64,000 bases of DNA from Auanema rhodensis. Lineage: Eukaryota > Animalia > Nematoda. Numbering within the stretch: position 1 is the stretch's first letter; the number at the start of each line of letters is the position of its first letter. The DNA is taken from positions 4,030,001 through 4,094,000 of the forward strand of contig OZ059895.1 in the NCBI GenBank assembly GCA_964057225.1, in the 5' to 3' direction. The translations under genes and the position numbers were made by a program. The notes under the pieces were generated by a model. That model saw only the letters and a list, made by a program, of their open reading frames with translations, was not told the origin of the DNA and made no database searches. Positions 1-64,000 of the stretch are shown piece after piece.

Positions 1-171
1 TATAAGTGTGAACTTATATCAGTTGATATCTCGGTGCATTTTCAAGCTAGCGCAAATCTGATAACACAGATCGACGCAGCTTAAAAATCCGCATTGAATG
101 CACTATACTTCATTGAGAAACGCTTAATACAAAACTTAGTTATGATCGTTTGAAAAATGATGCATTAGTGT

Positions 172-199
172 ATGTTGAGTTTCCATGTACACTCAACAT
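172..199. repeat. Intra-monomer 9-bp perfect inverted repeat with 10-nt loop
   Basis: ATGTTGAGT-ttccatgtac-ACTCAACAT, present in nearly every unit. Confidence 0.85.
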
Positions 200-212
200 T
201 GCTTCCAAAAAC

Positions 213-247
213 ATTTTGACAAAAATTTTTTCGAAAAATTTCAAAAT
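213..247. repeat. A/T-tract imperfect dyad
   Basis: ATTTTGA(213-219)/TCAAAAT(241-247) flanks TTTTTCGAAAAA (227-238, in G233 units). Confidence 0.7.
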
Positions 248-349
248 AATTTAGCAAAAAGTAGATGTTTTTAGATTCCTTTTTTCAAGGCAAAGACGAT
301 GGGCAATGTTATTCAATGAAAAAATTAATTCTTCAGGGTGAAAATCGAG

Positions 350-380
350 GATATAAGTGTGAACTTATATCAGTTGATAT
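350..380. repeat. Two overlapping short dyads at the monomer boundary
   Basis: GATATAAGT-gtga-ACTTATATC (350-371, 9-bp stem) overlaps ATATCA-gt-TGATAT (367-380, 6-bp stem). Confidence 0.85.
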
Positions 381-732
381 CTCGGTGCATTTTCAAGCTA
401 GCGCAAATCTGATAACACAGATCGACGCAGCTTAAAAATCCGCATCGAATGCACTATACTTCATTGAGAAACGCTTAATACAAAAATTAGTTATGATCAT
501 TTGAAAAATGATGCATTAGTGTATGTTGAGTTTCCATGTACACTCAACATTGCTTCCAAAAACATTTTGACAAAAATTTTTTCGAAAAATTTCAAAATAA
601 TTTAGCAAAAAGTAGATGTTTTTAGATTCATTTTTTTGAGGCAAAGACGATGGACAATGTTATTCAACGAAAAAATTAATTCTTCAGGGTGAAAATCGAG
701 GATATAAGTGTGAACTTATATCAGTTGATATC

Positions 733-799
733 TCGGTGCATTTTTAAGCTAGCGCAAATCTGATAACACAGATCGACGCAGCTTAAAAATCCGCATCGA
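733..799. repeat. Intra-monomer 67-nt imperfect inverted repeat (monomer pos 31-97; example in unit 3)
   Basis: TCGGTGC(31-37)/GCATCGA(91-97) with one G-T pair; ATTTTYAAGCT(38-48)/AGCTTAAAAAT(78-88); GCG/CGC; ATCTG/CAGAT closing an ATAACA loop. Confidence 0.85.
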
Positions 800-3700: not shown

Positions 3701-4913
3701 ACTCAACATTGCTTCCAAAAACATTTTGACAAACATTTTTTCAAAAAATTTCAAAATAATTTAGCAAAAAGTAGATGTTTTTAGATTCCTTTTTTCAAGG
3801 CAAAGACGATGGGCAATGTTATTCAACGAAAAAATTAATTCTTCAGGGTGAAAATCGAGGATATAAGTGTGAACTTATATCAGTTGATATCTCGGTGCAT
3901 TTCAAGCTAGCGCAAATCTGATAACACAGATCGACGCAGCTTAAAAATCCGCATCGAATGCACTATACTTCATTGAGAAACGCTTAATACAAAAATTAGT
4001 CATGATCGTTTGAAAAATGATGCATTAGTGTATGTTGAGTTTCCATGTACACTCAACATTGCTTCCAAAAACATTTTGACAAACATTTTTTCAAAAAATT
4101 TCAAAATAATTTAGCAAAAAGTAGATGTTTTTAGATTCCTTTTTTCGAGGCAAAGACGATGGGCAATGTTATTCAACGAAACAATTAATTCTTCAGGGTG
4201 AAAATCGAGGATATAAGTGTGAACTTATATCAGTTGATATCTCGGTGCATCTTCAAGCTAGCGCAAATCTGATAACACAGATCGACGCAGCTTAAAAATC
4301 CGCATCGAATGCACTATACTTCATTCAGAAACGCTTAATACAAAAATTAGTTATGATCGTTTGAAAAATGATGCATTAGTGTATGTTGAGTTTCCATGTA
4401 CACTCAAGATTGCTTCCAAAAACATTTTGACAAACATTTTTTCAAAAAATTTCAAAATAATTTAGCAAAAAGTAGATGTTTTTAGATTCCTTTTTTCAAG
4501 GCAAAGACGATGGGCAATGTTATTCAACGAAACAATTAATTCTTCAGGGTGAAAATCGAGGATATAAGTGTGAACTTATATCAGTTGATATCTCGGTGCA
4601 TCTTCAAGCTAGCGCAAATCTGATAACACAGATCGACGCAGCTTAAAAATCCGCATCGAATGCACTATACTTCATTGAGAAACGCTTAATACAAAAATTA
4701 GTTATGATCGTTTGAAAAATGATGCATTAGTGTATGTTGAGTTTCCATGTACACTCAACATTGCTTCCAAAAACATTTTGACAAACATTTTTTCAAAAAA
4801 TTTCAAAATAATTTAGCAAAAAGTAGATGTTTTTAGATTCCTTTTTTCAAGGCAAAGACGATGGGCAATGTTATTCAACGAAAAAATTAATTCTTCAGGG
4901 TGAAAATCGAGGA

Positions 4914-7900
4914 TATAAGTGTGAACTTATATCAGTTGATATCTCGGTGCATTTTCAAGCTAGCGCAAATCTGATAACACAGATCGACGCAGCTTAAAAA
5001 TCCGCATCGAATGCACTATACTTCATTGAGAAACGCTTAATACAAAAATTAGTTATGATCGTTTGAAAAATGATGCATTAGTGTATGTTGAGTTTCCATG
5101 TACACTCAACATTGCTTCCAAAAACATTTTGACAAAAATTTTTTCGAAAAATTTCAAAATAATTTAGCAAAAAGTAGATGTTTTTAGATTCATTTTTTTA
5201 AGGCAAAGACGATGGACAATGTTATTCAACGAAAAAATTAATTCTTCAGGGTGAAAATCGAAGATATAAGTGTGAACTTATATCAGTTGATATCTCGGTG
5301 CATTTTTAAGCTAGCGCAAATCTGATAACACAGATCTACGCAGCTTAAAAATCCGCATCGAATGCACTATACTTCATTGAGAAACGCTTAATACAAAAAT
5401 TAGTTATGATCGTTTGAAAAATGATGCATTAGTGTATGTTGAGTTTCCATGTACACTCAACATTGCTTCCAAAAACATTTTGACAAAAATTTTTTCAAAA
5501 AATTTCAAAATAATTTAGCAAAAAGTAGATGTTTTTAGATTCCTTTTTTCAAGGCAAAGACGATGGGCAATGTTATTCAACGAAAAAATTAATTCTTCAG
5601 GGTGAAAATCGAGGATATAAGTGTGAACTTATATCAGTTGATATCTCGGTGCATTTTCAAGCTAGCGCAAATCTGATAACACAGATCGACGCAGCTTAAA
5701 AATCCGCATCGAATGCACTATACTTCATTGAGAAACGCTTAATACAAAACTTAGTTATGATCGTTTGAAAAATGATGCATTAGTGTATGTTGAGTTTCCA
5801 TGTACACTCAACATTGCTTCCAAAAACATTTTGACAAAAATTTTTTCGAAAAATTTCAAAATAATTTAGCAAAAAGTAGATGTTTTTAGATTCATTTTTT
5901 TAAGGCAAAGACGATGGACAATGTTATTCAACGAAAAAATTAATTCTTCAGGGTGAAAATCGAGGATATAAGTGTGAACTTATATCAGTTGATATCTCGG
6001 TGCATTTTCAAGCTAGCGCAAATCTGATAACACAGATCGACGCAGCTTAAAAATCCGCATTGAATGCACTATACTTCATTGAGAAACGCTTAATACAAAA
6101 CTTAGTTATGATCGTTTGAAAAATGATGCATTAGTGTATGTTGAGTTTCCATGTACACTCAACATTGCTTCCAAAAACATTTTGACAAAAATTTTTTCGA
6201 AAAATTTTAAAATAATTTAGCAAAAAGTAGATGTTTTTAGATTCCTTTTTTCAAGGCAAAGACGATGGGCAATGTTATTCAATGAAAAAATTAATTCTTC
6301 AGGGTGAAAATCGAGGATATAAGTGTGAACTTATATCAGTTGATATCTCGGTGCATTTTCAAGCTAGCGCAAATCTGATAACACAGATCGACGCAGCTTA
6401 AAAATCCGCATCGAATGCACTATACTTCATTGAGAAACGCTTAATACAAAAATTAGTTATGATCATTTGAAAAATGATGCATTAGTGTATGTTGAGTTTC
6501 CATGTACACTCAACTTTGCTTCCAAAAACATTTTGACAAAAATTTTTTCGAAAAATTTCAAAATAATTTAGCAAAAAGTAGATGTTTTCAGATTCATTTT
6601 TTTGAGGCAAAGACGATGGACAATGTTATTCGACGAAAAAATTAATTCTTCAGGGTGAAAATCGAGGATATAAGTGTGAACTTATATCAGTTGATATCTC
6701 GGTGCATTTTTAAGCTAGCGCAAATCTGATAACACAGATCGACGCAGCTTAAAAATCCGCATCGAATGCACTATACTTCATTGAGAAACGCTTAATACAA
6801 AAATTAGTTATGATCGTTTGAAAAATGATGCATTAGTGTATGTTGAGTTTCCATGTACACTCAACATTGCTTCCAAAAACATTTTGACAAACATTTTTTC
6901 AAAAAATTTCAAAATAATTTAGCAAAAAGTAGATGTTTTTAGATTCCTTTTTTCAAGGCAAAGACGATGGGCAATGTTATTCAACGAAAAAATTAATTCT
7001 TCAGGGTGAAAATCGAGGATATAAGTGTGAACTTATATCAGTTGATATCTCGGTGCATTTTCAAGCTAGCGCAAATCTGATAACACAGATCGACGCAGCT
7101 TAAAAATCCGCATCGAATGCACTATACTTCATTGAGAAACGCTTAATACAAAAATTAGTTATGATCGTTTGAAAAATGATGCATTAGTGTATGTTGAGTT
7201 TCCATGTACACTCAACATTGCTTCCAAAAACATTTTGACAAAAATTTTTTCGAAAAATTTCAAAATAATTTAGCAAAAAGTAGATGTTTTTAGATTCATT
7301 TTTTTAAGGCAAAGACGATGGACAATGTTATTCAACGAAAAAATTAATTCTTCAGGGTGAAAATCGAAGATATAAGTGTGAACTTATATCAGTTGATATC
7401 TCGGTGCATTTTTAAGCTAGCGCAAATCTGATAACACAGATCTACGCAGCTTAAAAATCCGCATCGAATGCACTATACTTCATTGAGAAACGCTTAATAC
7501 AAAATATAGTTATGATCGTTTGAAAAATGATGCATTAGTGTATGTTGAGTTTCCATGTACACTCAACATTGCTTCCAAAAACATTTTGACAAAAATTTTT
7601 TCAAAAAATTTCAAAATAATTTAGCAAAAAGTAGATGTTTTTAGATTCCTTTTTTCAAGGCAAAGACGATGGGCAATGTTATTCAACGAAAAAATTAATT
7701 CTTCAGGGTGAAAATCGAGGATATAAGTGTGAACTTATATCAGTTGATATCTCGGTGCATTTTCAAGCTAGCGCAAATCTGATAACACAGATCGACGCAG
7801 CTTAAAAATCCGCATCGAATGCACTATACTTCATTGAGAAACGCTTAATACAAAACTTAGTTATGATCGTTTGAAAAATGATGCATTAGTGTATGTTGAG

Positions 7901-9125
7901 TTTCCATGTACACTCAACATTGCTTCCAAAAACATTTTGACAAAAATTTTTTCGAAAAATTTCAAAATAATTTAGCAAAAAGTAGATGTTTTTAGATTCA
8001 TTTTTTTAAGGCAAAGACGATGGACAATGTTATTCAACGAAAAAATTAATTCTTCAGGGTGAAAATCGAGGATATAAGTGTGAACTTATATCAGTTGATA
8101 TCTCGGTGCATTTTCAAGCTAGCGCAAATCTGATAACACAGATCGACGCAGCTTAAAAATCCGCATTGAATGCACTATACTTCATTGAGAAACGCTTAAT
8201 ACAAAACTTAGTTATGATCGTTTGAAAAATGATGCATTAGTGTATGTTGAGTTTCCATGTACACTCAACATTGCTTCCAAAAACATTTTGACAAAAATTT
8301 TTTCGAAAAATTTTAAAATAATTTAGCAAAAAGTAGATGTTTTTAGATTCCTTTTTTCAAGGCAAAGACGATGGGCAATGTTATTCAATGAAAAAATTAA
8401 TTCTTCAGGGTGAAAATCGAGGATATAAGTGTGAACTTATATCAGTTGATATCTCGGTGCATTTTCAAGCTAGCGCAAATCTGATAACACAGATCGACGC
8501 AGCTTAAAAATCCGCATCGAATGCACTATACTTCATTGAGAAACGCTTAATACAAAAATTAGTTATGATCATTTGAAAAATGATGCATTAGTGTATGTTG
8601 AGTTTCCATGTACACTCAACTTTGCTTCCAAAAACATTTTGACAAAAATTTTTTCGAAAAATTTCAAAATAATTTAGCAAAAAGTAGATGTTTTCAGATT
8701 CATTTTTTTGAGGCAAAGACGATGGACAATGTTATTCGACGAAAAAATTAATTCTTCAGGGTGAAAATCGAGGATATAAGTGTGAACTTATATCAGTTGA
8801 TATCTCGGTGCATTTTTAAGCTAGCGCAAATCTGATAACACAGATCGACGCAGCTTAAAAATCCGCATCGAATGCACTATACTTCATTGAGAAACGCTTA
8901 ATACAAAAATTAGTTATGATCGTTTGAAAAATGATGCATTAGTGTATGTTGAGTTTCCATGTACACTCAACATTGCTTCCAAAAACATTTTGACAAACAT
9001 TTTTTCAAAAAATTTCAAAATAATTTAGCAAAAAGTAGATGTTTTTAGATTCCTTTTTTCAAGGCAAAGACGATGGGCAATGTTATTCAACGAAAAAATT
9101 AATTCTTCAGGGTGAAAATCGAGGA
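4914..9125 (+). repeat. Hexamer (2106-bp) higher-order tandem duplication, 2 copies
   Basis: Rare variants pair at +2106: 5337/7443, 6061/8167, 6208/8314, 6515/8621, 6589/8695, 6632/8738. Confidence 0.9.
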
Positions 9126-9827
9126 TATAAGTGTGAACTTATATCAGTTGATATCTCGGTGCATTTTCAAGCTAGCGCAAATCTGATAACACAGATCGAC
9201 GCAGCTTAAAAATCCGCATCGAATGCACTATACTTCATTGAGAAACGCTTAATACAAAACTTAGTTATGATCGTTTGAAAAATGATGCATTAGTGTATGT
9301 TGAGTTTCCATGTACACTCAACATTGCTTCCAAAAACATTTTGACAAAAATTTTTTCGAAAAATTTCAAAATAATTTAGCAAAAAGTAGATGTTTTTAGA
9401 TTCATTTTTTTGAGGCAAAGACGATGGACAATGTTATTCAACGAAAAAATTAATTCTTCAGGGTGAAAATCGAGGATATAAGTGTGAACTTATATCAGTT
9501 GATATCTCGGTGCATTTTTAAGCTAGCGCAAATCTGATAACACAGATCGACGCAGCTTAAAAATCCGCATCGAATGCACTATACTTCATTGAGAAACGCT
9601 TAATACAAAAATTAGTTATGATCGTTTGAAAAATGATGCATTAATGTATGTTGAGTTTCCATGTACACTCAAGATTGCTTCCAAAAACATTTTGACAAAC
9701 ATTTTTTCAAAAAATTTCAAAATAATTTAGCAAAAAGTAGATGTTTTTAGATTCCTTTTTTCAAGGCAAAGACGATGGGCAATGTTATTCAACGAAACAA
9801 TTAATTCTTCAGGGTGAAAATCGAGGA

Positions 9828-32300: not shown

Positions 32301-33083
32301 TGTGAACTTATATCAGTTGATATCTCGGTGCATTTTTAAGCTAGCGCAAATCTGATAACACAGATCGACGCAGCTTAAAAATCCGCATCGAATGCACTAT
32401 ACTTCATTGAGAAACGCTTAATACAAAAATTAGTTATGATCGTTTGAAAAATGATGCATTAGTGTATGTTGAGTTTCCATGTACACTCAACATTGCTTCC
32501 AAAAACATTTTGACAAAAATTTTTTCGAAAAATTTCAAAATAATTTAGCAAAAAGTAGATGTTTTTAGATTCATTTTTTTGAGGCAAAGACGATGGACAA
32601 TGTTATTCAACGAAAAAATTAATTCTTCAGGGTGAAAATCGAGGATATAAGTGTGAACTTATATCAGTTGATATCTCGGTGCATTTTTAAGCTAGCGCAA
32701 ATCTGATAACACAGATCGACGCAGCTTAAAAATCCGCATCGAATGCACTATACTTCATTGAGAAACGCTTAATACAAAAATTAGTTATGATCGTTTGAAA
32801 AATGATGCATTAGTGTATGTTGAGTTTCCATGTACACTCAACATTGCTTCCAAAAACATTTTGACAAACATTTTTTCAAAAAATTTCAAAATAATTTAGC
32901 AAAAAGTAGATGTTTTTAGATTCCTTTTTTCAAGGCAAAGACGATGGGCAATGTTATTCAACGAAAAAATTAATTCTTCAGGGTGAAAATCGAGGATATA
33001 AGTGTGAACTTATATCAGTTGATATCTCGGTGCATTTTTAAGCTAGCGCAAATCTGATAACACAGATCGACGCAGCTTAAAAA

Positions 33084-33093
33084 ACTCAAACAA
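33084..33093. other. Inversion junction with 10-bp filler ACTCAAACAA
   Basis: Forward consensus ...GCAGCTTAAAAA|TCC stops at 33083 (monomer pos 87). Reverse consensus TTTCGTTGAATAAC begins at 33094 (monomer pos 321). The intervening bases fit neither register. Confidence 0.93.
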
Positions 33094-36000
33094 TTTCGTT
33101 GAATAACATTGTCCATCGTCTTTGCCTTAATAAAATGAATCTAAAAACATCTACTTTTTGCTAAATTATTTTGAAATTTTTCGAAAAAATGTTTGTCAAA
33201 ATGTTTTTGGAAGCAATGTTAGGTGTACATGGAAACTCAACATACACTAATGCATCATTTTTCAAACGATCATAACTAATTTTTGTATTAAGCGTTTCTT
33301 AATGAAGTATAGTGCATTCGATGCGGATTTTTAAGCTGCGTCGATCTGTGTTATCAGATTTGCGCTAGCTTAAAAATGCACCGAGATATCAACTGATATT
33401 AGTTCACACTTATATCCTCGATTTTCACCCTGAAGAATTAATTTTTTCGTTGAATAACATTGCCCATCGTCTTTGCCTTGAAAAAAGGAATCTAAAAACA
33501 TCTACTTTTTGCTAAATTATTTTGAAATTTTTTGAAAAAATGTTTGTCAAAATGTTTTTGGAAGCAATGTTGAGTGTACATGGAAACTCAACATACACTA
33601 ATGCATCATTTTTCAAACGATCATAACTAATTTTTGTATTGAGCGTTTCTCAATGAAGTATAGTGCATTCGATGCGGATTTTTAAGCTGCGTCGATCTGT
33701 GTTATCAGATTTGCGCTAGCTTAAAAATGCACCGAGATATCAACTGATATAAGTTCACACTTATATCCTCGATTTTCACCCTGAAGAATTAATTTTTTCG
33801 TTGAATAACATTGCCCATCGTCTTTGCCTTGAAAAAAGGAATCTAAAAACATCTACTTTTTGCTAAATTATTTTGAAATTTTTTGAAAAAATGTTTGTCA
33901 AAATGTTTTTGGAAGCAATGTTAGGTGTACATGGAAACTCAACATACACTAATGCATCATTTTTCAAACGATCATAACTAATTTTTGTATTAAGCGTTTC
34001 TTAATGAAGTATAGTGCATTCGATGCGGATTTTTAAGCTGCGTCGATCTGTGTTATCAGATTTGCGCTAGCTTAAAAATGCACCGAGATATCAACTGATA
34101 TTAGTTCACACTTATATCCTCGATTTTCACCCTGAAGAATTAATTTTTTCGTTGAATAACATTGCCCATCGTCTTTGCCTTGAAAAAAGGAATCTAAAAA
34201 CATCTACTTTTTGCTAAATTATTTTGAAATTTTTTGAAAAAATGTTTGTCAAAATGTTTTTGGAAGCAATGTTGAGTGTACATGGAAACTCAACATACAC
34301 TAATGCATCATTTTTCAAACGATCATAACTAATTTTTGTATTAAGCGTTTCTCAATGAAGTATAGTGCATTCGATGCGGATTTTTAAGCTGCGTCGATCT
34401 GTGTTATCAGATTTGCGCTAGCTTAAAAATGCACCGAGACATCAACTGATATAAGTTCACACTTATATCCTCGATTTTCACCCTGAAGAATTAATTTTTT
34501 CGTTGAATAACATTGCCCATCGTCTTTGCCTTGAAAAAAGGAATCTAAAAACATCTACTTTTTGCTAAATTATTTTGAAATTTTTTGAAAAAATGTTTGT
34601 CAAAATGTTTTTGGAAGCAATGTTGAGTGTACATGGAAACTCAACATACACTAATGCATCATTTTTCAAACGATCATAACTAAGTTTTGTATTAAGCGTT
34701 TCTCAATGAAGTATAGTGCATTCGATGCGGATTTTTAAGCTGCGTCGATCTGTGTTATCAGATTTGCGCTAGCTTAAAAATGCACCGAGACATCAACTGA
34801 TATAAGTTCACACTTATATCCTCGATTTTCACCCTGAAGAATTAATTTTTTCGTTGAATAACATTGCCCATCGTCTTTGCCTTGAAAAAAGGAATCTAAA
34901 AACATCTACTTTTTGCTAAATTATTTTGAAATTTTTTGAAAAAATGTTTGTCAAAATGTTTTTGGAAGCAATGTTGAGTGTACATGGAAACTCAACATAC
35001 ACTAATGCATCATTTTTCAAACGATCATAACTAATTTTTGTATTAAGCGTTTCTCAATGAAGTATAGTGCATTCGATGCGGATTTTTAAGCTGCGTCGAT
35101 CTGTGTTATCAGATTTGCGCTAGCTTAAAAATGCACCGAGATATCAACTGATATAAGTTCAAACTTATATCCTCGATTTTCACCCTGAAGAATTAATTTT
35201 TTCGTTGAATAACATTGTCCATCGTCTTTGCCTTAAAAAAATGAATCTAAAAACATCTACTTTTTGCTAAATTATTTTGAAATTTTTCGAAAAAATTTTT
35301 GTCAAAATGTTTTTGGAAGCAATGTTGAGTGTACATGGAAACTCAACATACACTAATGCATCATTTTTCAAACGATCATAACTAATTTTTGTATTAAGCG
35401 TTTCTCAATGAAGTATAGTGCATTCGATGCGGATTTTTAAGCTGCGTCGATCTGTGTTATCAGATTTGCGCTAGCTTGAAAATGCACCGAGATATCAACT
35501 GATATAAGTTCACACTTATATCCTCGATTTTCACCCTGAAGAATTAATTTTTTCGTTGAATAACATTGCCCATCGTCTTTGCCTTGAAAAAAGGAATCTA
35601 AAAACATCTACTTTTTGCTAAATTATTTTGAAATTTTTCGAAAAAATTTTTGTCAAAATGTTTTTGGAAGCAATGTTGAGTGTACATGGAAACTCAACAT
35701 ACACTAATGCATCATTTTTCAAACGATCATAACTAAGTTTTGTTTTAAGCGTTTTTCAATGAAGTATAGTGCATTCGATGCGGATTTTTAAGCTGCGTCG
35801 ATCTGTGTTATCAGATTTGCGCTAGCTTGAAAATGCACCGAGATATCAACTGATATAAGTTCACACTTATATCCTCGATTTTCACCCTGAAGAATTAATT
35901 TTTTCGTTGAATAACATTGCCCATCGTCTTTGCCTTGAAAAAAGGAATCTAAAAACATCTACTTTTTGCTAAATTATTTTGAAATTTTTTGAAAAAATTT

Positions 36001-36222
36001 TTGTCAAAATGTTTTTGGAAGCAATGTTGAGTGTACATGGAAACTCAACATACACTAATGCATCATTTTTCAAACGATCATAACTAATTTTTGTATTAAG
36101 CGTTTCTCAATGAAGTATAGTGCAATCGATGCGGATTTTTAAGCTGCGTCGATCTGTGTTATCAGATTTGCGCTAGCTTGAAAATGCACCGAGATATCAA
36201 CTGATATAAGTTCACACTTATA

Positions 36223-39200: not shown

Positions 39201-39732
39201 AACTCAACATACACTAATGCATCATTTTTCAAACGATCATAACTAATTTTTGTATTAAGCGTTTCTCAATGAAGTATAGTGCATTCGATGCGGATTTTTA
39301 AGCTGCGTCGATCTGTGTTATCAGATTTGCGCTAGCTTGAAAATGCACCGAGATATCAACTGATATAAGTTCACACTTATATCCTCGATTTTCACCCTGA
39401 AGAATTAATTTTTTCGTTGAATAACATTGCCCATCGTCTTTGCCTTGAAAAAAGGAATCTAAAAACATCTACTTTTTGCTAAATTATTTTGAAATTTTTC
39501 GAAAAAATTTTTGTCAAAATGTTTTTGGAAGCAATGTTGAGTGTACATGGAAACTCAACATACACTAATGCATCATTTTTCAAACGATCATAACTAAGTT
39601 TTGTATTAAGCGTTTCTCAATGAAGTATAGTGCATTCGATGCGGATTTTTAAGCTGCGTCGATCTGTGTTATCAGATTTGCGCTAGCTTGAAAATGCACC
39701 GAGATATCAACTGATATAAGTTCACACTTATA
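36223..39732 (-). repeat. Pentamer (1755-bp) duplication (approximate limits)
   Basis: CCTCAATT at 36930/38685 and TTCAAACTT at 37268/39023. Confidence 0.75.
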
Positions 39733-42700
39733 TCCTCGATTTTCACCCTGAAGAATTAATTTTTTCGTTGAATAACATTGCCCATCGTCTTTGCCTTGAA
39801 AAAAGGAATCTAAAAACATCTACTTTTTGCTAAATTATTTTGAAATTTTTTGAAAAAATGTTTGTCAAAATGTTTTTGGAAGCAATGTTGAGTGTACATG
39901 GAAACTCAACATACACTAATGCATCATTTTTCAAACGATCATAACTAATTTTTGTATTAAGCGTTTCTCAATGAAGTATAGTGCATTCGATGCGGATTCT
40001 TAAGCTGCGTCGATCTGTGTTATCAGATTTGCGCTAGCTTAAAAATGCACCGAGATATCAACTGATATAAGTTCAAACTTATATCCTCGATTTTCACCCT
40101 GAAGAATTAATTTTTTCGTTGAATAACATTGTCCATCGTCTTTGCCTTAAAAAAATGAATCTAAAAACATCTACTTTTTGCTAAATTATTTTGAAATTTT
40201 TCGAAAAAATTTTTGTCAAAATGTTTTTGGAAGCAATGTTGAGTGTACATGGAAACTCAACATACACTAATGCATCATTTTTCAAACGATCATAACTAAT
40301 TTTTGTATTAAGCGTTTCTCAATGAAGTATAGTGCATTCGATGCGGATTTTTAAGCTGCGTCGATCTGTGTTATCAGATTTGCGCTAGCTTGAAAATGCA
40401 CCGAGATATCAACTGATATAAGTTCACACTTATATCCTCGATTTTCACCCTGAAGAATTAATTTTTTCGTTGAATAACATTGCCCATCGTCTTTGCCTTG
40501 AAAAAAGGAATCTAAAAACATCTACTTTTTGCTAAATTATTTTGAAATTTTTCGAAAAAATTTTTGTCAAAATGTTTTTGGAAGCAATGTTGAGTGTACA
40601 TGGAAACTCAACATACACTAATGCATCATTTTTCAAACGATCATAACTAAGTTTTGTATTAAGCGTTTCTCAATGAAGTATAGTGCATTCGATGCGGATT
40701 TTTAAGCTGCGTCGATCTGTGTTATCAGATTTGCGCTAGCTTGAAAATGCACCGAGATATCAACTGATATAAGTTCACACTTATATCCTCGATTTTCACC
40801 CTGAAGAATTAATTTTTTCGTTGAATAACATTGCCCATCGTCTTTGCCTTAAAAAAAGGAATCTAAAAACATCTACTTTTTGCTAAATTATTTTGAAATT
40901 TTTTGAAAAAATTTTTGTCAAAATGTTTTTGGAAGCAATGTTGAGTGTACATGGAAACTCAACATACACTAATGCATCATTTTTCAAACGATCATAACTA
41001 ATTTTTGTATAAAGCGTTTCTCAATGAAGTATAGTGCAATCGATGCGGATTTTTAAGCTGCGTCGATCTGTGTTATCAGATTTGCGCTAGCTTGAAAATG
41101 CACCGAGATATCAACTGATATAAGTTCACACTTATATCCTCGATTTTCACCCTGAAGAATTAATTTTTTCGTTGAATAACATTGTCCATCGTCTTTGCCT
41201 TAAAAAAATGAATCTAAAAACATCTACTTTTTGCTAAATTATTTTGAAATTTTTCGAAAAAATTTTTGTCAAAATGTTTTTGGAAGCAATGTTGAGTGTA
41301 CATGGAAACTCAACATACACTAATGCATCATTTTTCAAACGATCATAACTAATTTTTGTATTAAGCGTTTCTCAATGAAGTATAGTGCATTCGATGCGGA
41401 TTTTTAAGCTGCGTCGATCTGTGTTATCAGATTTGCGCTAGCTTGAAAATGCACCGAGATATCAACTGATATAAGTTCACACTTATATCCTCGATTTTCA
41501 CCCTGAAGAATTAATTTTTTCGTTGAATAACATTGCCCATCGTCTTTGCCTTGAAAAAAGGAATCTAAAAACATCTACTTTTTGCTAAATTATTTTGAAA
41601 TTTTTCGAAAAAATTTTTGTCAAAATGTTTTTGGAAGCAATGTTGAGTGTACATGGAAACTCAACATACACTAATGCATCATTTTTCAAACGATCATAAC
41701 TAATTTTTGTATTAAGCGTTTCTCAATGAAGTATAGTGCATTCGATGCGGATTTTTAAGCTGCGTCGATCTGTGTTATCAGATTTGCGCTAGCTTGAAAA
41801 TGCACCGAGATATCAACTGATATAAGTTCACACTTATATCCTCGATTTTCACCCTGAAGAATTAATTTTTTCGTTGAATAACATTGTCCATCGTCTTTGC
41901 CTTAAAAAAATGAATCTAAAAACATCTACTTTTTGCTAAATTATTTTGAAATTTTTCGAAAAAATTTTTGTCAAAATGTTTTTGGAAGCAATGTTGAGTG
42001 TACATGGAAACTCAACATACACTAATGCATCATTTTTCAAACGATCATAACTAATTTTTGTATTAAGCGTTTCTCAATGAAGTATAGTGCATTCGATGCG
42101 GATTTTTAAGCTGCGTCGATCTGTGTTATCAGATTTGCGCTAGCTTGAAAATGCACCGAGATATCAACTGATATAAGTTCACACTTATATCCTCGATTTT
42201 CACCCTGAAGAATTAATTTTTTCGTTGAATAACATTGCCCATCGTCTTTGCCTTGAAAAAAGGAATCTAAAAACATCTACTTTTTGCTAAATTATTCTGA
42301 AATTTTTTGAAAAAATTTTTGTCAAAATGTTTTTGGAAGCAATGTTGAGTGTACATGGAAACTCAACATACACTAATGCATCATTTTTCAAACGATCATA
42401 ACTAATTTTTGTATTAAGCGTTTCTCAATGAAGTATAGTGCATTCGATGCGGATTTTTAAGCTGCGTCGATCTGTGTTATCAGATTTGCGCTAGCTTGAA
42501 AATGCACCGAGATATCAACTGATATAAGTTCACACTTATATCCTCGATTTTCACCCTGAAGAATTAATTTTTTCGTTGAATAACATTGCCCATCGTCTTT
42601 GCCTTGAAAAAAGGAATCTAAAAACATCTACTTTTTGCTAAATTATTTTGAAATTTTTCGAAAAAATTTTTGTCAAAATGTTTTTGGAAGCAATGTTGAG

Positions 42701-45700
42701 TGTACATGGAAACTCAACATACACTAATGCATCATTTTTCAAACGATCATAACTAATTTTTGTATTAAGCGTTTCTCAATGAAGTATAGTGCATTCGATG
42801 CGGATTTTTAAGCTGCGTCGATCTGTGTTATCAGATTTGCGCTAGCTTGAAAATGCACCGAGATATCAACTGATATAAGTTCACACTTATATCCTCGATT
42901 TTCACCCTGAAGAATTAATTTTTTCGTTGAATAACATTGCCCATCGTCTTTGCCTTGAAAAAAGGAATCTAAAAACATCTACTTTTTGCTAAATTATTTT
43001 GAAATTTTTCGAAAAAATTTTTGTCAAAATGTTTTTGGAAGCAATGTTGAGTGTACATGGAAACTCAACATACACTAATGCATCATTTTTCAAACGATCA
43101 TAACTAATTTTTGTATTAAGCGTTTCTCAATGAAGTATAGTGCATTCGATGCGGATTTTTAAGCTGCGTCGATCTGTGTTATCAGATTTGCGCTAGCTTG
43201 AAAATGCACCGAGATATCAACTGATATAAGTTCACACTTATATCCTCGATTTTCACCCTGAAGAATCAATTTTTTCGTTGAATAACATTGCCCATCGTCT
43301 TTGCCTTGAAAAAAGGAATCTAAAAACATCTACTTTTTGCTAAATTATTTTGAAATTTTTCGAAAAAATTTTTGTCAAAATGTTTTTGGAAGCAATGTTG
43401 AGTGTACATGGAAACTCAACATACACTAATGCATCATTTTTCAAACGATCATAACTAAGTTTTGTATTAAGCGTTTCTCAATGAAGTATAGTGCATTCGA
43501 TGCGGATTTTTAAACTGCGTCGATCTGTGTTATCAGATTTGCGCTAGCTTGAAAATGCACCGAGATATCAACTGATATAAGTTCACACTTATATCCTCGA
43601 TTTTCACCCTGAAGAATTAATTTTTTCGTTGAATAACATTGCCCATCGTCTTTGCCTTGAAAAAAGGAATCTAAAAACATCTACTTTTTGCTAAATTATT
43701 TTGAAATTTTTCGAAAAAATTTTTGTCAAAATGTTTTTGGAAGCAATGTTGAGTGTACATGGAAACTCAACATACACTAATGCATCATTTTTCAAACGAT
43801 CATAACTAATTTTTGTATTAAGCGTTTCTCAATGAAGTATAGTGCATTCGATGCGGATTTTTAAGCTGCGTCGATCTGTGTTATCAGATTTGCGCTAGCT
43901 TGAAAATGCACCGAGATATCAACTGATATAAGTTCACACTTATATCCTCGATTTTCACCCTGAAGAATTAATTTTTTCGTTGAATAACATTGCCCATCGT
44001 CTTTGCCTTGAAAAAAGGAATCTAAAAACATCTACTTTTTGCTAAATTATTTTGAAATTTTTTGAAAAAATGTTTGTCAAAATGTTTTTGGAAGCAATGT
44101 TGAGTGTACATGGAAACTCAACATACACTAATGCATCATTTTTCAAACGATCATAACTAATTTTTGTATTAAGCGTTTCTCAATGAAGTATAGTGCATTC
44201 GATGCGGATTCTTAAGCTGCGTCGATCTGTGTTATCAGATTTGCGCTAGCTTAAAAATGCACCGAGATATCAACTGATATAAGTTCAAACTTATATCCTC
44301 GATTTTCACCCTGAAGAATTAATTTTTTCGTTGAATAACATTGTCCATCGTCTTTGCCTTAAAAAAATGAATCTAAAAACATCTACTTTTTGCTAAATTA
44401 TTTTGAAATTTTTCGAAAAAATTTTTGTCAAAATGTTTTTGGAAGCAATGTTGAGTGTACATGGAAACTCAACATACACTAATGCATCATTTTTCAAACG
44501 ATCATAACTAATTTTTGTATTAAGCGTTTCTCAATGAAGTATAGTGCATTCGATGCGGATTTTTAAGCTGCGTCGATCTGTGTTATCAGATTTGCGCTAG
44601 CTTGAAAATGCACCGAGATATCAACTGATATAAGTTCACACTTATATCCTCGATTTTCACCCTGAAGAATTAATTTTTTCGTTGAATAACATTGCCCATC
44701 GTCTTTGCCTTGAAAAAAGGAATCTAAAAACATCTACTTTTTGCTAAATTATTTTGAAATTTTTCGAAAAAATTTTTGTCAAAATGTTTTTGGAAGCAAT
44801 GTTGAGTGTACATGGAAACTCAACATACACTAATGCATCATTTTTCAAACGATCATAACTAAGTTTTGTATTAAGCGTTTCTCAATGAAGTATAGTGCAT
44901 TCGATGCGGATTTTTAAGCTGCGTCGATCTGTGTTATCAGATTTGCGCTAGCTTGAAAATGCACCGAGATATCAACTGATATAAGTTCACACTTATATCC
45001 TCGATTTTCACCCTGAAGAATTAATTTTTTCGTTGAATAACATTGCCCATCGTCTTTGCCTTGAAAAAAGGAATCTAAAAACATCTACTTTTTGCTAAAT
45101 TATTTTGAAATTTTTTGAAAAAATTTTTGTCAAAATGTTTTTGGAAGCAATGTTGAGTGTACATGGAAACTCAACATACACTAATGCATCATTTTTCAAA
45201 CGATCATAACTAATTTTTGTATAAAGCGTTTCTCAATGAAGTATAGTGCAATCGATGCGGATTTTTAAGCTGCGTCGATCTGTGTTATCAGATTTGCGCT
45301 AGCTTGAAAATGCACCGAGATATCAACTGATATAAGTTCACACTTATATCCTCGATTTTCACCCTGAAGAATTAATTTTTTCGTTGAATAACATTGTCCA
45401 TCGTCTTTGCCTTAAAAAAATGAATCTAAAAACATCTACTTTTTGCTAAATTATTTTGAAATTTTTCGAAAAAATTTTTGTCAAAATGTTTTTGGAAGCA
45501 ATGTTGAGTGTACATGGAAACTCAACATACACTAATGCATCATTTTTCAAACGATCATAACTAATTTTTGTATTAAGCGTTTCTCAATGAAGTATAGTGC
45601 ATTCGATGCGGATTTTTAAGCTGCGTCGATCTGTGTTATCAGATTTGCGCTAGCTTGAAAATGCACCGAGATATCAACTGATATAAGTTCACACTTATAT

Positions 45701-47454
45701 CCTCGATTTTCACCCTGAAGAATTAATTTTTTCGTTGAATAACATTGCCCATCGTCTTTGCCTTGAAAAAAGGAATCTAAAAACATCTACTTTTTGCTAA
45801 ATTATTTTGAAATTTTTCGAAAAAATTTTTGTCAAAATGTTTTTGGAAGCAATGTTGAGTGTACATGGAAACTCAACATACACTAATGCATCATTTTTCA
45901 AACGATCATAACTAATTTTTGTATTAAGCGTTTCTCAATGAAGTATAGTGCATTCGATGCGGATTTTTAAGCTGCGTCGATCTGTGTTATCAGATTTGCG
46001 CTAGCTTGAAAATGCACCGAGATATCAACTGATATAAGTTCACACTTATATCCTCGATTTTCACCCTGAAGAATTAATTTTTTCGTTGAATAACATTGTC
46101 CATCGTCTTTGCCTTAAAAAAATGAATCTAAAAACATCTACTTTTTGCTAAATTATTTTGAAATTTTTCGAAAAAATTTTTGTCAAAATGTTTTTGGAAG
46201 CAATGTTGAGTGTACATGGAAACTCAACATACACTAATGCATCATTTTTCAAACGATCATAACTAATTTTTGTATTAAGCGTTTCTCAATGAAGTATAGT
46301 GCATTCGATGCGGATTTTTAAGCTGCGTCGATCTGTGTTATCAGATTTGCGCTAGCTTGAAAATGCACCGAGATATCAACTGATATAAGTTCACACTTAT
46401 ATCCTCGATTTTCACCCTGAAGAATTAATTTTTTCGTTGAATAACATTGCCCATCGTCTTTGCCTTGAAAAAAGGAATCTAAAAACATCTACTTTTTGCT
46501 AAATTATTCTGAAATTTTTTGAAAAAATTTTTGTCAAAATGTTTTTGGAAGCAATGTTGAGTGTACATGGAAACTCAACATACACTAATGCATCATTTTT
46601 CAAACGATCATAACTAATTTTTGTATTAAGCGTTTCTCAATGAAGTATAGTGCATTCGATGCGGATTTTTAAGCTGCGTCGATCTGTGTTATCAGATTTG
46701 CGCTAGCTTGAAAATGCACCGAGATATCAACTGATATAAGTTCACACTTATATCCTCGATTTTCACCCTGAAGAATCAATTTTTTCGTTGAATAACATTG
46801 CCCATCGTCTTTGCCTTGAAAAAAGGAATCTAAAAACATCTACTTTTTGCTAAATTATTTTGAAATTTTTCGAAAAAATTTTTGTCAAAATGTTTTTGGA
46901 AGCAATGTTGAGTGTACATGGAAACTCAACATACACTAATGCATCATTTTTCAAACGATCATAACTAAGTTTTGTATTAAGCGTTTCTCAATGAAGTATA
47001 GTGCATTCGATGCGGATTTTTAAACTGCGTCGATCTGTGTTATCAGATTTGCGCTAGCTTGAAAATGCACCGAGATATCAACTGATATAAGTTCACACTT
47101 ATATCCTCGATTTTCACCCTGAAGAATTAATTTTTTCGTTGAATAACATTGCCCATCGTCTTTGCCTTGAAAAAAGGAATCTAAAAACATCTACTTTTTG
47201 CTAAATTATTTTGAAATTTTTCGAAAAAATTTTTGTCAAAATGTTTTTGGAAGCAATGTTGAGTGTACATGGAAACTCAACATACACTAATGCATCATTT
47301 TTCAAACGATCATAACTAATTTTTGTATTAAGCGTTTCTCAATGAAGTATAGTGCATTCGATGCGGATTTTTAAGCTGCGTCGATCTGTGTTATCAGATT
47401 TGCGCTAGCTTGAAAATGCACCGAGATATCAACTGATATAAGTTCACACTTATA
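39733..47454 (-). repeat. 12-mer (4212-bp) duplication whose second copy is 2 units shorter (approximate limits)
   Basis: Markers at +4212: 39999/44211, 41011/45223, 42297/46509. Later markers at +3510: 43267/46777, 43514/47024. Confidence 0.82.
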
Positions 47455-50400
47455 TCCTCGATTTTCACCCTGAAGAATTAATTTTTTCGTTGAATAACAT
47501 TGCCCATCGTCTTTGCCTTGAAAAAAGGAATCTAAAAACATCTACTTTTTGCTAAATTATTTTGAAATTTTTCGAAAAAATTTTTGTCAAAATGTTTTTG
47601 GAAGCAATGTTGAGTGTACATGGAAACTCAACATACACTAATGCATCATTTTTCAAACGATCATAACTAAGTTTTGTATTAAGCGTTTCTCAATGAAGTA
47701 TAGTGCATTCGATGCGGATTTTTAAGCTGCGTCGATCTGTGTTATCAGATTTGCGCTAGCTTGAAAATGAACCGAGATATCAACTGATATAAGTTCACAC
47801 TTATATCCTCGATTTTCACCCTGAAGAATTAATTTTTTCGTTGAATAACATTGTCCATCGTCTTTGCCTTAAAAAAATGAATCTAAAAACATCTACTTTT
47901 TGCTAAATTATTTTGAAATTTTTCGAAAAAATTTTTGTCAAAATGTTTTTGGAAGCAATGTTGAGTGTACATGGAAACTCAACATACACTAATGCATCAT
48001 TTTTCAAACGATCATAACTAATTTTTGTATTAAGCGTTTCTCAATGAAGTATAGTGCATTCGATGCGGATTTTTAAGCTGCGTCGATCTGTGTTATCAGA
48101 TTTGCGCTAGCTTGAAAATGCACCGAGATATCAACTGATATAAGTTCACACTTATATCCTCGATTTTCACCCTGAAGAATTAATTTTTTCGTTGAATAAC
48201 ATTGTCCATCGTCTTTGCCTTAAAAAAATGAATCTAAAAACATCTACTTTTTGCTAAATTATTTTGAAATTTTTCGAAAAAATTTTTGTCAAAATGTTTT
48301 TGGAAGCAATGTTGAGTGTACATGGAAACTCAACATACACTAATGCATCATTTTTCAAACGATCATAACTAATTTTTGTATTAAGCGTTTCTCAATGAAG
48401 TATAGTGCAATCGATGCGGATTTTTAAGCTGCGTCGATCTGTGTTATCAGATTTGCGCTAGCTTGAAAATGCACCGAGATATCAACTGATATAAGTTCAC
48501 ACTTATATCCTCGATTTTCACCCTGAAGAATTAATTTTTTCGTTGAATAACATTGCCCATCGTCTTTGCCTCGAAAAAAGGAATCTAAAAACATCTACTT
48601 TTTGCTAAATTATTTTGAAATTTTTCGAAAAAATTTTTGTCAAAATGTTTTTGGAAGCAATGTTGAGTGTACATGGAAACTCAACATACACTAATGCATC
48701 ATTTTTCAAACGATCATAACTAATTTTTGTATTAAGCGTTTCTCAATGAAGTATAGTGCATTCGATGCGGATTTTTATGCTGCGTCGATCTGTGTTATCA
48801 GATTTGCGCTAGCTTGAAAATGCACCGAGATATCAACTGATATAAGTTCACACTTATATCCTCGATTTTCACCCTGAAGAATTAATTTTTTCGTTGAATA
48901 ACATTGCCCATCGTCTTTGCCTTGAAAAAAGGAATCTAAAAACATCTACTTTTTGCTAAATTATTTTGAAATTTTTCGAAAAAATTTTTGTCAAAATGTT
49001 TTTGGAAGCAATGTTGAGTGTACATGGAAACTCAACATACACTAATGCATCATTTTTCACACGATCATAACTAAGTTTTGTATTAAGCGTTTCTCAATGA
49101 AGTATAGTGCATTCGATGCGGATTTTTAAGCTGCGTCGATCTGTGTTATCAGATTTGCGCTAGCTTGAAAGTGCACCGAGATATCAACTGATATAAGTTC
49201 ACACTTATATCCTCGATTTTCACCCTGAAGAATTAATTTTTTCGTTGAATAACATTGCCCATCGTCTTTGCCTTGAAAAAAGGAATCTAAAAACATCTAC
49301 TTTTTGCTAAATTATTTTGAAATTTTTTGAAAAAATTTTTGTCAAAATGTTTTTGGAAGCAATGTTGAGTGTACATGGAAACTCAACATACACTAATGCA
49401 TCATTTTTCAAACGATCATAACTAATTTTTGTATGAAGCGTTTCTCAATGAAGTATAGTGCAATCGATGCGGATTTTTAAGCTGCGTCGATCTGTGTTAT
49501 CAGATTTGCGCTAGCTTGAAAATGCACCGAGATATCAACTGATATAAGTTCACACTTATATCCTCGATTTTCACCCTGAAGAATTAATTTTTTCGTTGAA
49601 TAACATTGCCCATCGTCTTTGCCTTGAAAAAAGGAATCTAAAAACATCTACTTTTTGCTAAATTATCTTGAAATTTTTCGAAAAAATTTTTGTCAAAATG
49701 TTTTTGGAAGCAATGTTGAGTGTACATGGAAACTCAACATACACTAATGCATCATTTTTCAAACGATCATAACTAATTTTTGTATTAAGCGTTTCTCAAT
49801 GAAGTATTGTGCATTCGATGCGGATTTTTAAGCTGCGTCGATCTGTGTTATCAGATTTGCGCTAGCTTGAAAATGCACCGAGATATCAACTGATATAAGT
49901 TCACACTTATATCCTCGATTTTCACCCTGAAGAATTAATTTTTTCGTTGAATAACATTGTCCATCGTCTTTGCCTTAAAAAAATGAATCTAAAAACATCT
50001 ACTTTTTGCTAAATTATTTTGAAATTTTTCGAAAAAATTTTTGTCAAAATGTTTTTGGAAGCAATGTTGAGTGTACATGGAAACTCAACATACACTAATG
50101 CATCATTTTTCAAACGATCATAACTAATTTTTGTATTAAGCGTTTCTCAATGAAGTATAGTGCATTCGATGCGGATTTTTAAGCTGCGTCGATCTGTGTT
50201 ATCAGATTTGCGCTAGCTTGAAAATGCACCGAGATATCAACTGATATAAGTTCACACTTATATCCTCGATTTTCACCCTGAAGAATTAATTTTTTCGTTG
50301 AATAACATTGCCCATCGTCTTTGCCTTGAAAAAAGGAATCTAAAAACATCTACTTTTTGCTAAATTATTTTGAAATTTTTTGAAAAAATTTTTGTCAAAA

Positions 50401-53400: not shown

Positions 53401-53772
53401 TGATATAAGTTCACACTTATATCCTCGATTTTCACCCTGAAGAATTAATTTTTTCGTTGAATAACATTGCCCATCGTCTTTGCCTTGAAAAAAGGAATCT
53501 AAAAACATCTACTTTTTGCTAAATTATTTTGAAATTTTTTGAAAAAATTTTTGTCAAAATGTTTTTGGAAGCAATGTTGAGTGTACATGGAAACTCAACA
53601 TACACTAATGCATCATTTTTCAAACGATCATAACTAATTTTTGTATAAAGCGTTTTTCAATGAAGTATAGTGCAATCGATGCGGATTTTTAAGCTGCGTC
53701 GATCTGTGTTATCAGATTTGCGCTAGCTTGAAAATGCACCGAGATATCAACTGATATAAGTTCACACTTATA

Positions 53773-59700: not shown

Positions 59701-61143
59701 ATGCACCGAGATATCAACTGATATAAGTTCACACTTATATCCTCGATTTTCACCCTGAAGAATTAATTTTTTCGTTGAATAACATTGTCCATCGTCTTTG
59801 CCTTAAAAAAATGAATCTAAAAACATCTACTTTTTGCTAAATTATTTTGAAATTTTTCGAAAAAATGTTTGTCAAAATGTTTTTGGAAGCAATGTTGAGT
59901 GTACATGGAAACTCAACATACACTAATGCATCATTTTTCAAACGATCATAACTAATTTTTGTATTAAGCGTTTCTCAATGGAGTATAGTGCATTCGATGC
60001 GGATTTTTAAGCTGCGTCGATCTGTGTTATCAGATTTGCGCTAGCTTAAAAATGCACCGAGATATCAACTGATATAAGTTCACACTTATATCCTCGATTT
60101 TCACCCTGAAGAATTAATTTTTTCGTTGAATAACATTGCCCATCGTCTTTGCCTTGAAAAAAGGAATCTAAAAACATCTACTTTTTGCTAAATTATTTTG
60201 AAATTTTTTGAAAAAATGTTTGTCAAAATGTTTTTGGAAGAAATGTTGAGTGTACATGGAAACTCAACATACACTAATGCATCATTTTTCAAACGATCAT
60301 AACTAATTTTTGTATTAAGCGTTTCTCAATGAAGTATAGTGCATTCGATGCGGATTTTTAAGCTGCGTCGATCTGTGTTATCAGATTTGCGCTAGCTTGA
60401 AAATGCACCGAGATATCAACTGATATAAGTTCACACTTATATCCTCGATTTTCACCCTGAAGAATTAATTTTTTCGTTGAATAACATTGCCCATCGTCTT
60501 TGCCTTGAAAAAAGGAATCTAAAAACATCTACTTTTTGCTAAATTATTTTGAAATTTTTTGAAAAAATGTTTGTCAAAATGTTTTTGGAAGCAATGTTGA
60601 GTGTACATGGAAACTCAACATACACTAATGCATCATTTTTCAAACGATCATAACTAATTTTTGTATTAAGCGTTTCTCAATGAAGTATAGTGCATTCGAT
60701 GCGGATTTTTAAGCTGCGTCGATCTGTGTTATCAGATTTGCGCTAGCTTAAAAATGCACCGAGATATCAACTGATATAAGTTCAAACTTATATCCTCGAT
60801 TTTCACCCTGAAGAATTAATTTTTTCGTTGAATAACATTGCCCATCGTCTTTGCCTTGAAAAAAGGAATCTAAAAACATCTACTTTTTGCTAAATTATTT
60901 TGAAATTTTTTGAAAAAATGTTTGTCAAAATGTTTTTGGAAGCAATGTTGAGTGTACATGGAAACTCAACATACACTAATGCATCATTTTTCAAACGATC
61001 ATAACTAATTTTTGTATTAAGCGTTTCTCAATGAAGTATAGTGCATTCGATGCGGATTTTTAAGCTGCGTCGATCTGTGTTATCAGATTTGCGCTAGCTT
61101 AAAAATGCACCGAGATATCAACTGATATAAGTTCAAACTTAAA
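53773..61143 (-). repeat. Nested 3-, 5- and 12-mer duplications (approximate limits)
   Basis: GAAGAAATG at 54274, 57433, 57784, 58486, 60241; CAATGGAG at 57173, 58226, 59981; TTCAAACTT at 54818, 59030, 60785. Spacings are 1053, 1755 and 4212. Confidence 0.75.
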
Positions 61144-64000
61144 TCCTCGATTTTCACCCTGAAGAATTAATTTTTTCGTTGAATAACATTGTCCATCGTC
61201 TTTGCCTTAAAAAAATGAATCTAAAAACATCTACTTTTTGCTAAATTATTTTGAAATTTTTCGAAAAAATTTTTGTCAAAATGTTTTTGGAAGCAATGTT
61301 GAGTGTACATGGAAACTCAACATACACTAATGCATCATTTTTCAAACGATCATAACTAATTTTTGTATTAAGCGTTTCTCAATGAAGTATAGTGCATTCG
61401 ATGCGGATTTTTAAGCTGCGTCGATCTGTGTTATCAGATTTGCGCTAGCTTGAAAATGCACCGAGATATCAACTGATATAAGTTCACACTTATATCCTCG
61501 ATTTTCACCCTGAAGAATTAATTTTTTCGTTGAATAACATTGCCCATCGTCTTTGCCTTGAAAAAAGGAATCTAAAAACATCTACTTTTTGCTAAATTAT
61601 TTTGAAATTTTTCGAAAAAATTTTTGTCAAAATGTTTTTGGAAGCAATGTTGAGTGTACATGGAAACTCAACATACACTAATGCATCATTTTTCAAACGA
61701 TCATAACTAAGTTTTGTATTAAGCGTTTCTTAATGAAGTATAGTGCTTTCGATGCGGATTTTTAAGCTGCGTCGATCTGTGTTATCAGATTTGCGCTAGC
61801 TTGAAAATGCACCGAGATATCAACTGATATAAGTTCACACTTATATCCTCGATTTTCACCCTGAAGAATTAATTTTTTCGTTGAATAACATTGCCCATCG
61901 TCTTTGCCTTGAAAAAAGGAATCTAAAAACATCTACTTTTTGCTAAATTATTTTGAAATTTTTTGAAAAAATTTTTGTCAAAATGTTTTTGGAAGCAATG
62001 TTGAGTGTACATGGAAACTCAACATACACTAATGCATCATTTTTCAAACGATCATAACTAATTTTTGTATTAAGCGTTTCTCAATGAAGTATAGTGCAAT
62101 CGATGCGGATTTTTAAGCTGCGTCGATCTGTGTTATCAGATTTGCGCTAGCTTGAAAATGCACCGAGATATCAACTGATATAAGTTCACACTTATATCCT
62201 CGATTTTCACCCTGAAGAATTAATTTTTTCGTTGAATAACATTGCCCATCGTCTTTGCCTTGAAAAAAGGAATCTAAAAACATCTACTTTTTGCTAAATT
62301 ATTTTGAAATTTTTCGAAAAAATTTTTGTCAAAATGTTTTTGGAAGCAATGTTGAGTGTACATGGAAACTCAACATACACTAATGCATCATTTTTCAAAC
62401 GATCATAACTAAGTTTTGTATTAAGCGTTTCTCAATGAAGTATAGTGCATTCGATGCGGATTTTTAAGCTGCGTCGATCTGTGTTATCAGATTTGCGCTA
62501 GCTTGAAAATGCACCGAGATATCAACTGATATAAGTTCACACTTATATCCTCGATTTTCACCCTGAAGAATTAATTTTTTCGTTGAATAACATTGCCCAT
62601 CGTCTTTGCCTTGAAAAAAGGAATCTAAAAACATCTACTTTTTGCTAAATTATTTTGAAATTTTTTGAAAAAATGTTTGTCAAAATGTTTTTGGAAGCAA
62701 TGTTGAGTGTACATGGAAACTCAACATACACTAATGCATCATTTTTCAAACGATCATAACTAATTTTTGTATTAAGCGTTTCTCAATGAAGTATAGTGCA
62801 TTCGATGCGGATTTTTAAGCTGCGTCGATCTGTGTTATCAGATTTGCGCTAGCTTAAAAATGCACCGAGATATCAACTGATATAAGTTCGAACTTATATC
62901 CTCGATTTTCACCCTGAAGAATTAATTTTTTCGTTGAATAACATTGCCCATCGTCTTTGCCTTGAAAAAAGGAATCTAAAAACATCTACTTTTTGCTAAA
63001 TTATTTTGAAATTTTTCGAAAAAATTTTTGTCAAAATGTTTTTGGAAGCAATGTTGAGTGTACATGGAAACTCAACATACACTAATGCATCATTTTTCAA
63101 ACGATCATAACTAAGTTTTGTATTAAGCGTTTCTCAATGAAGTATAGTGCATTCGATGCGGATTTTTAAGCTGCGTCGATCTGTGTTATCAGATTTGCGC
63201 TAGCTTAAAAATTCACCGAGATATCAACTGATATAAGTTAACACTTATATCCTCGATTTTCACCCTGAAGAATTAATTTTTTCGTTGAATAACATTGTCC
63301 ATCATCTTTGCCTTAAAAAAAGGAATCTAAAAACATCTACTTTTTGCTAAATTATTTTGAAATTTTTCGAAAAAATTTTTGTCAAAATGTTTTTGGAAGC
63401 AATGTTGAGTGTACATGGAAACTCAACATACACTAATGCATCATTTTTCAAACGATCATAACTAATTTTTGTATTAAGCGTTTCTCAATGTAGTATAGTG
63501 CATTCGATGCGGATTTTTAAGCTGCGTCGATCTGTGTTATCAGATTTGCGCTAGCTTGAAAATGCACCGAGATATCAACTGATATAAGTTCACACTTATA
63601 TCCTCGATTTTCACCCTGAAGAATTAATTTTTTCGTTGAATAACATTGCCCATCGTCTTTGCCTTGAAAAAAGGAATCTAAAAACATCTACTTTTTGCTA
63701 AATTATTTTGGAATTTTTTGAAAAAATGTTTGTCAAAATGTTTTTGGAAGCAATGTTGAGTGTACATGGAAACTCAACATACACTAATGCATCATTTTTC
63801 AAACGATCGTAACTAATTTTTGTATTAAGCGTTTCTCAATGAAGTATAGTGCATTCGATGCGGATTTTTAAGCTGCGTCGATCTGTGTTATCAGATTTGC
63901 GCTAGCTTGAAAATGCACCGAGATATCAACTGATATAAGTTCACACTTATATCCTCGATTTTCACCCTGAAGAATTAATTTTTTCGTTGAATAACATTGC

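Follow-up and report, generated by a model that had tools for sequence, protein, structure and literature searches.

The window analysed here, a stretch of 64,000 nt from contig OZ059895.1 (coordinates 1-64000), is made up throughout of one satellite with a repeat unit of 351 bp, whose orientation flips once, at 33084-33093. The site of the flip is read as a genuine inversion breakpoint, i.e. a strand switch, head to head, within a single satellite array that is homogeneous and non-coding; we put the probability of this reading at about 0.7. A preliminary description of the same DNA had presented it as a giant, near-identical macro-palindrome with a short spacer, and as a candidate structural landmark. 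The single switch and the register of pairing around its centre were found again, but the two arms are not mirror copies of each other and the window is not a mirror-image palindrome. The interpretation as a structural landmark is not supported.

The satellite array and the order of its units

Tandem Repeats Finder (TRF) resolved the window into two 351-bp arrays of opposite orientation, of 94.2 copies (1-33083) and 88.1 copies (33094-64000), each with 98% matches and next to no indels. GC skew and AT skew each have a constant sign as far as 32 kb, which is reversed from 34 kb, the sole change falling in the 32001-34000 bin, and GC content stays at 31-32% across the whole window. Both results bear out the single strand switch, and the arms extend, as described earlier, to both window edges. 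Only the letters A, C, G and T occur and the count of N is zero; the junction is therefore neither a scaffold gap nor a scaffold join.

Single units were delimited by cutting the arms at a conserved 14-mer. The left arm yielded 94 full units (90 of 351 bp, three of 352 bp and one of 350 bp) and the right arm 87, all of them of 351 bp. All 181 units were aligned, and left units were compared with right units in mirror order, in 31 registers. The mean number of differences per 351-bp unit ranges between 4.77 and 5.71 in these registers, with no minimum at or near the one pairing 33094 with 32966, which corresponds to offset +1 and, at 5.71 differences per unit, is the worst of the 31. The earlier statement that the arms could pair in many registers shifted by 351 bp is numerically true (31 of 31 tested, at 4.8-5.7 differences per 351 bp).

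Units taken from opposite arms differ on average at 5.20 positions, against 5.52 for pairs within the left arm and 4.68 for pairs within the right one. Since distances within and between arms are alike, the identity of the arms (about 98.5%) is the homogeneity of the array itself: in the unit alignment any two units are about 98.5% identical, whatever their register or orientation. The similarity of the arms, on which the "giant near-identical macro-palindrome" was founded, does not make them a special object. When the arms are compared without gaps, in the 33094-32966 register, identity falls to 74%, because the left arm holds the three 352-bp units and the 350-bp one. The same distances, together with the TRF orientations, establish that one repeat family lies on both sides of the junction in opposite orientation, as in other strand switches.

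No mirrored tract of low distance was found at any offset: the best 8-unit tract shows 1.9 differences per unit, versus 2.4 in a wrong-order control, and none lies within the first 30 units from the junction. The units adjoining the centre carry different variants on the left and on the right. Direct duplications within the arms, evaluated by the statistic of the mirror search, reach 0.12-0.75 differences per unit and were readily detected. The symmetric order of unit variants that marks a palindrome or fold-back duplication is missing, and so is the mirror identity within read length that marks a fold-back sequencing artefact. The absence of mirror order excludes read artefacts of the fold-back kind and equally a recent duplication by fold-back. 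As judged from the unit sequences, it excludes any origin by backward copying, namely a missed hairpin adapter, an amplification fold-back chimera or a recent sister-chromatid fusion, because all of these predict mirror-image arms.

The unit variants relate the two arms to each other. Every frequent variant is found in both arms, with much the same frequency in each; 12 variants are shared, while 40 are private to the left arm and 38 to the right one, mostly rare. Some private variants have been amplified locally, as an A at column 276 (12 units in the left arm, 0 in the right) and a T at column 52 (0 and 9, respectively). A differentiation index calculated across the junction is 0.022, within the range of 0.001-0.114 obtained for arbitrary boundaries placed inside the arms. 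Both arms also share the unit-type order C-D-A, in the unit's own direction, as expected of one array with an inverted part. Taken together, shared variants, common order and low index indicate that both arms stem from one local array domain, part of which was turned round. The three-unit C-D-A order is loose, and may be seen for example at about 15-25 kb in the left arm and at 34-38 kb in the right one; going by its presence in both, it would represent an incipient higher-order repeat, older than the inversion.

Longer duplications were observed within either arm. In the minus-strand arm, 12 units (4.2 kb) at 43521-47732 are a direct duplication of 39309-43520, with 0-3 differences per 351-bp unit, which indicates recent segmental amplification inside the array. 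In the plus-strand arm, a 6-unit (2.1-kb) direct duplication relates 4636-7092 to 6742-9198, with 0-2 differences per unit. The right arm opens with five units of a single type, 150C/321T (33094-34800), and these have private changes shared either two units apart (293A) or between neighbours (306G). This pattern points to local duplication beside the junction, the junction itself not being included.

The satellite is a plain non-coding, AT-rich one (32% GC). In the window no transfer RNA (tRNA) gene was found, nor any open reading frame of at least 70 aa in any frame. A search of the window against Rfam at E <= 1 gave no credible match; the only hit, to the plant microRNA precursor model MIR5048, scores 30 bits versus a gathering score of 160, spans the junction and mirrors the hairpin formed there. 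The 351-bp unit contains no RNA gene recognisable by the tRNA or Rfam searches, so the window does not qualify as an array of non-coding RNA genes. The possibility that the unit is an ancient dimer of about 175 bp was rejected, the alignment of one half to the other scoring 18, versus a mean of 18.3 for shuffled sequences. Three words from the unit occur in no paper of the literature searched by sequence, and a literature search for a "351-bp satellite" returned nothing relevant.

The junction

The features of the window are collected in Table 1. Each base around the junction was compared with the base 351 bp off: the left-arm match ends at 33083 and the right-arm match begins at 33094, both abruptly. 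A 23-mer across the junction occurs once in the window, and the junction is thus discrete by three measures, the single skew sign change, the abrupt end and start of the matches and the unique junction word.

The 10-nt filler between the two matches has no template in the 351-bp unit at <=1 edit, its best match requiring 2 edits. Random 10-mers with the composition of the filler find a match at <=1 edit in 9-11% of trials, so that weaker matches carry no meaning. A templated origin of the filler was consequently rejected, with a best match at 2 edits and a chance rate of about 10% already at <=1 edit. The left arm breaks after ...GCAGCTTAAAAA, where a hairpin contained within the unit has its 3' foot; this coincidence is a single observation, outside statistical testing. 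The right arm starts inside an A/T run, between ...CGAAA and AAATT.

An inverted-repeat search returned arms at 32700-32966 and 33094-33360, 127 nt apart, which is exactly the register given by the preliminary description, with 33094 facing 32966 and 32967-33093 unpaired. The next register pairs 32961-33083 with 33328-33450 and leaves 244 nt between the arms. Near the centre the complementarity of the arms is 97-99%. The figure of 127 nt, formerly called a spacer, holds as the minimum size of the loop; only 10 nt at the centre match neither arm, and the other 117 nt are ordinary left-arm satellite. They stay unpaired in the closest register because the phase of the 351-bp unit at the break is not the same in the two arms.

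The proposed potential for hairpin formation in single-stranded DNA was confirmed by folding. As single-stranded DNA, the segment 32800-33260 folds back at -190.7 kcal/mol, versus -44 kcal/mol for shuffled sequences (z = -36), and the 127-nt loop has small hairpins of its own (-21.6 kcal/mol, z = -5.3). It had been asked whether the junction word is itself amplified: it occurs once in the window, as said, with no copy in metagenome contigs. The Southern blot suggested after EcoRV or NheI digestion is impractical, because the computed junction fragments (364 bp and 322 bp, respectively), present once, are too rare and too close to the 351-bp ladder produced by the one EcoRV and one NheI site of each unit.

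Table 1. Arms, junction and associated structures in the window, with the evidence used to delimit them
Feature	Coordinates	Strand	Description and evidence
Left arm, 351-bp array	1-33083	+	About 94 units, truncated by the window edge; TRF; match to the sequence 351 bp upstream through 33083
Right arm, 351-bp array	33094-64000	-	About 88 units, truncated by the window edge; TRF; skew reversed
Junction filler ACTCAAACAA, 10 nt	33084-33093	.	Matches neither arm; base-by-base comparison with units 351 bp away on each side
Unit-internal hairpin TTTTTAAGCT ... AGCTTAAAAA	33035-33083	+	29 nt between arms; repeat search and fold; 3' foot is the left breakpoint
Unpaired stretch in the closest fold-back register	32967-33093	+	127 nt, made up of 117 nt of ordinary left-arm unit and the filler
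Innermost paired stretch	32700-33360	.	Arms of 267 nt each, 97% complementary; repeat search; fold-back z = -36

Origin of the junction and alternative explanations

The inversion breakpoint may have arisen through a repair of the end-joining type that united two ends of one local array, one of them turned round. The left end would have been broken at the hairpin foot and the right one inside the A/T run, and repair would have left the 10 nt of untemplated filler. Filler of this kind is typical of cellular end joining and would be unexpected from blunt ligation of two library fragments. Afterwards, each arm would have turned over separately, as local blocks of 3 to 12 units were duplicated in direct order. 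When single-stranded, the junction could fold back as a long hairpin whose loop measures 127 nt or more, and recombination between the arms would be expected to invert the intervening DNA, not to delete it. Nothing points to a cellular function of the junction.

Three points weigh against a genuine inversion breakpoint. The junction is known here from assembled sequence, and a search for sequencing runs by 71 nt of it, in which two words were sampled, listed none; the partner breakpoint that a two-break inversion calls for was not seen in the window, and lies outside; and neither the junction 23-mer nor a 30-mer of the unit is present in metagenome contigs, so that there is no independent copy.

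The first of these points speaks for an assembly misjoin, which we regard as unlikely, though well worth weighing. Stretches of the array could have been joined in the wrong orientation by a graph error, or by a chimeric long read made up of two unrelated satellite fragments set head to head, and an array with 98% matches is a hard case for assemblers. Fold-back artefacts predict mirror-image arms, however, and these are absent at every offset. The window is free of N, with no scaffold gap at the junction, and a 10-nt untemplated filler would be unexpected from simple ligation or template-switch chimeras. Units near the junction have private variants on both sides, so that reads there can be placed. 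The arms draw on one local pool of variants and both have the C-D-A order; for a misjoin, moreover, the assembler would have to have passed over the real continuation of each locus.

A true but old palindromic duplication is considerably less probable. Here, mirror arms produced by a fold-back or a breakage-fusion-bridge cycle would have lost their symmetry through later unequal exchange in each arm. The head-to-head geometry and the left break at a hairpin foot would fit a hairpin-primed fold-back, and turnover within the arms is active, as shown by the 6- and 12-unit duplications with 0-3 differences. No residual mirror signal was found, not even in the first units beside the centre, and the arms break at different unit phases with filler between them, an arrangement not expected of a simple fold-back at a single hairpin. 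On the present sequence such a history is indistinguishable from a two-break inversion.

More improbable still is the proposal that satellite junctions of the head-to-head kind recur, are under selection or carry a mechanistic meaning in the germline-restricted repeat blocks of a DNA-eliminating nematode, the junction of the window being one of several. They might then be scars of fold-back repair following programmed or accidental breaks, and drive the expansion of the blocks; alternatively, they might be sources of hairpin RNA, from which small RNAs would mark the satellite family for silencing and elimination.

The lowest probability goes to a functional landmark: the junction would mark a boundary of chromatin or of a centromere, be a programmed site of breakage, or give rise to hairpin RNA and small RNAs by which the satellite family is silenced. 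Nematodes have holocentric chromosomes; if the host is a nematode, the idea of a centromere boundary, to which nothing in the window lends support, loses its basis, and such a boundary is unlikely. Although the junction has a strong fold-back potential as DNA (z = -36), a read-through transcript of it would be self-complementary, and germline-restricted satellite arrays have been described for Auanema rhodense (10.64898/2026.08.27.747507), it is neither conserved nor repeated (once in the window, never in metagenome contigs), searches of the window brought up neither an RNA family nor a promoter-bearing gene nor a motif, and the variant make-up has no discontinuity there (0.022).

If the inversion breakpoint is real, at least one inversion has taken place in the array, and units on opposite sides of the junction cannot be homogenised by unequal crossing-over across it. 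It would also be a useful unique marker in an otherwise featureless array, and an anchor for the validation of assemblies. No new kind of element is revealed, strand switches being already documented in satellite arrays; the window contributes one data point on inversions in the repeat blocks of its host. The case is also a warning: where a satellite is homogeneous, a lone strand switch is by itself enough to produce "giant near-identical inverted arms", and the mirror-order test tells such a trivial switch apart from true palindromic duplications and from artefacts of the fold-back type.

Comparison with known systems

The germline genome of Auanema rhodense was assembled from HiFi reads with hifiasm to 180 Mb, and contains 19,554 tRNA loci (10.64898/2026.08.27.747507). 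It includes germline-restricted, multi-megabase tandem repeats with units of 167-504 nt, and a palindromic 29-nt break motif (10.64898/2026.08.27.747507). The 351-bp unit falls within this size range; none of the four probes AT-1, XR-1, XT-1 and XT-2 matches the unit, the best requiring 8 edits, and the text of the paper mentions neither 351 nor strand switches. The repeat units listed in papers on DNA elimination in Caenorhabditis and Mesorhabditis also differ from the 351-bp unit.

With fold-back and breakage-fusion-bridge duplications (PMC6007334) the window shares a head-to-head junction and, going by the 10 nt that match neither arm, a short, non-duplicated centre, although 127 nt stay unpaired; unlike in those, a mirror-image order of variants is absent.

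A closer likeness is found in human satellites. In the T2T-CHM13 assembly, a polymorphic inversion of 1.7 Mb lies in the alpha-satellite array of chromosome 1, more than 200 inversion breakpoints were found in HSat3B5 and beta satellite, and breakpoints per megabase were counted by satellite family (10.1101/2021.07.12.452052). As in these strand switches, one repeat family occurs in both orientations around a discrete junction in a homogeneous head-to-tail array, and the arms are similar because the array is homogeneous. The window differs in organism and in its unrelated 351-bp unit, and only a single breakpoint is seen; validation by reads and polymorphism in the population have been shown for the human cases, whereas the present junction is known from the assembly. 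Across 325 surveyed species, satellites show a tendency to arise on one strand, and the plots mark both strands (10.64898/2026.09.17.752431).

Fragility may be evaluated against inverted repeats studied in yeast, where the spacer counts most and a sharp transition for hairpin attack and fork stalling lies at about 8 nt (PMC8053094). Between Alu inverted repeats in duplex DNA, recombination drops about 300-fold when the spacer is lengthened from 12 to 100 bp, although repeats with a wide spacing still interact once the region is single-stranded (PMC10164571). The window resembles the Alu repeats in its long arms of high identity, able to fold into hairpins when the DNA is single-stranded; identity, at 97-99% near the centre and about 98.5% per unit, is well above the level of about 75% below which the effect is lost. 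Unlike them, its arms are tandem repeats with many competing registers, and its spacer is 127 nt at the minimum and 244 nt in the next register, instead of the 12 nt or less typical of highly fragile repeats. The argument that a short spacer makes the junction fragile is therefore not supported. By analogy with the yeast systems, the junction would belong among comparatively stable inverted repeats, unless the region becomes single-stranded, and a spacer of this class is in keeping with its persistence while the array turns over elsewhere.

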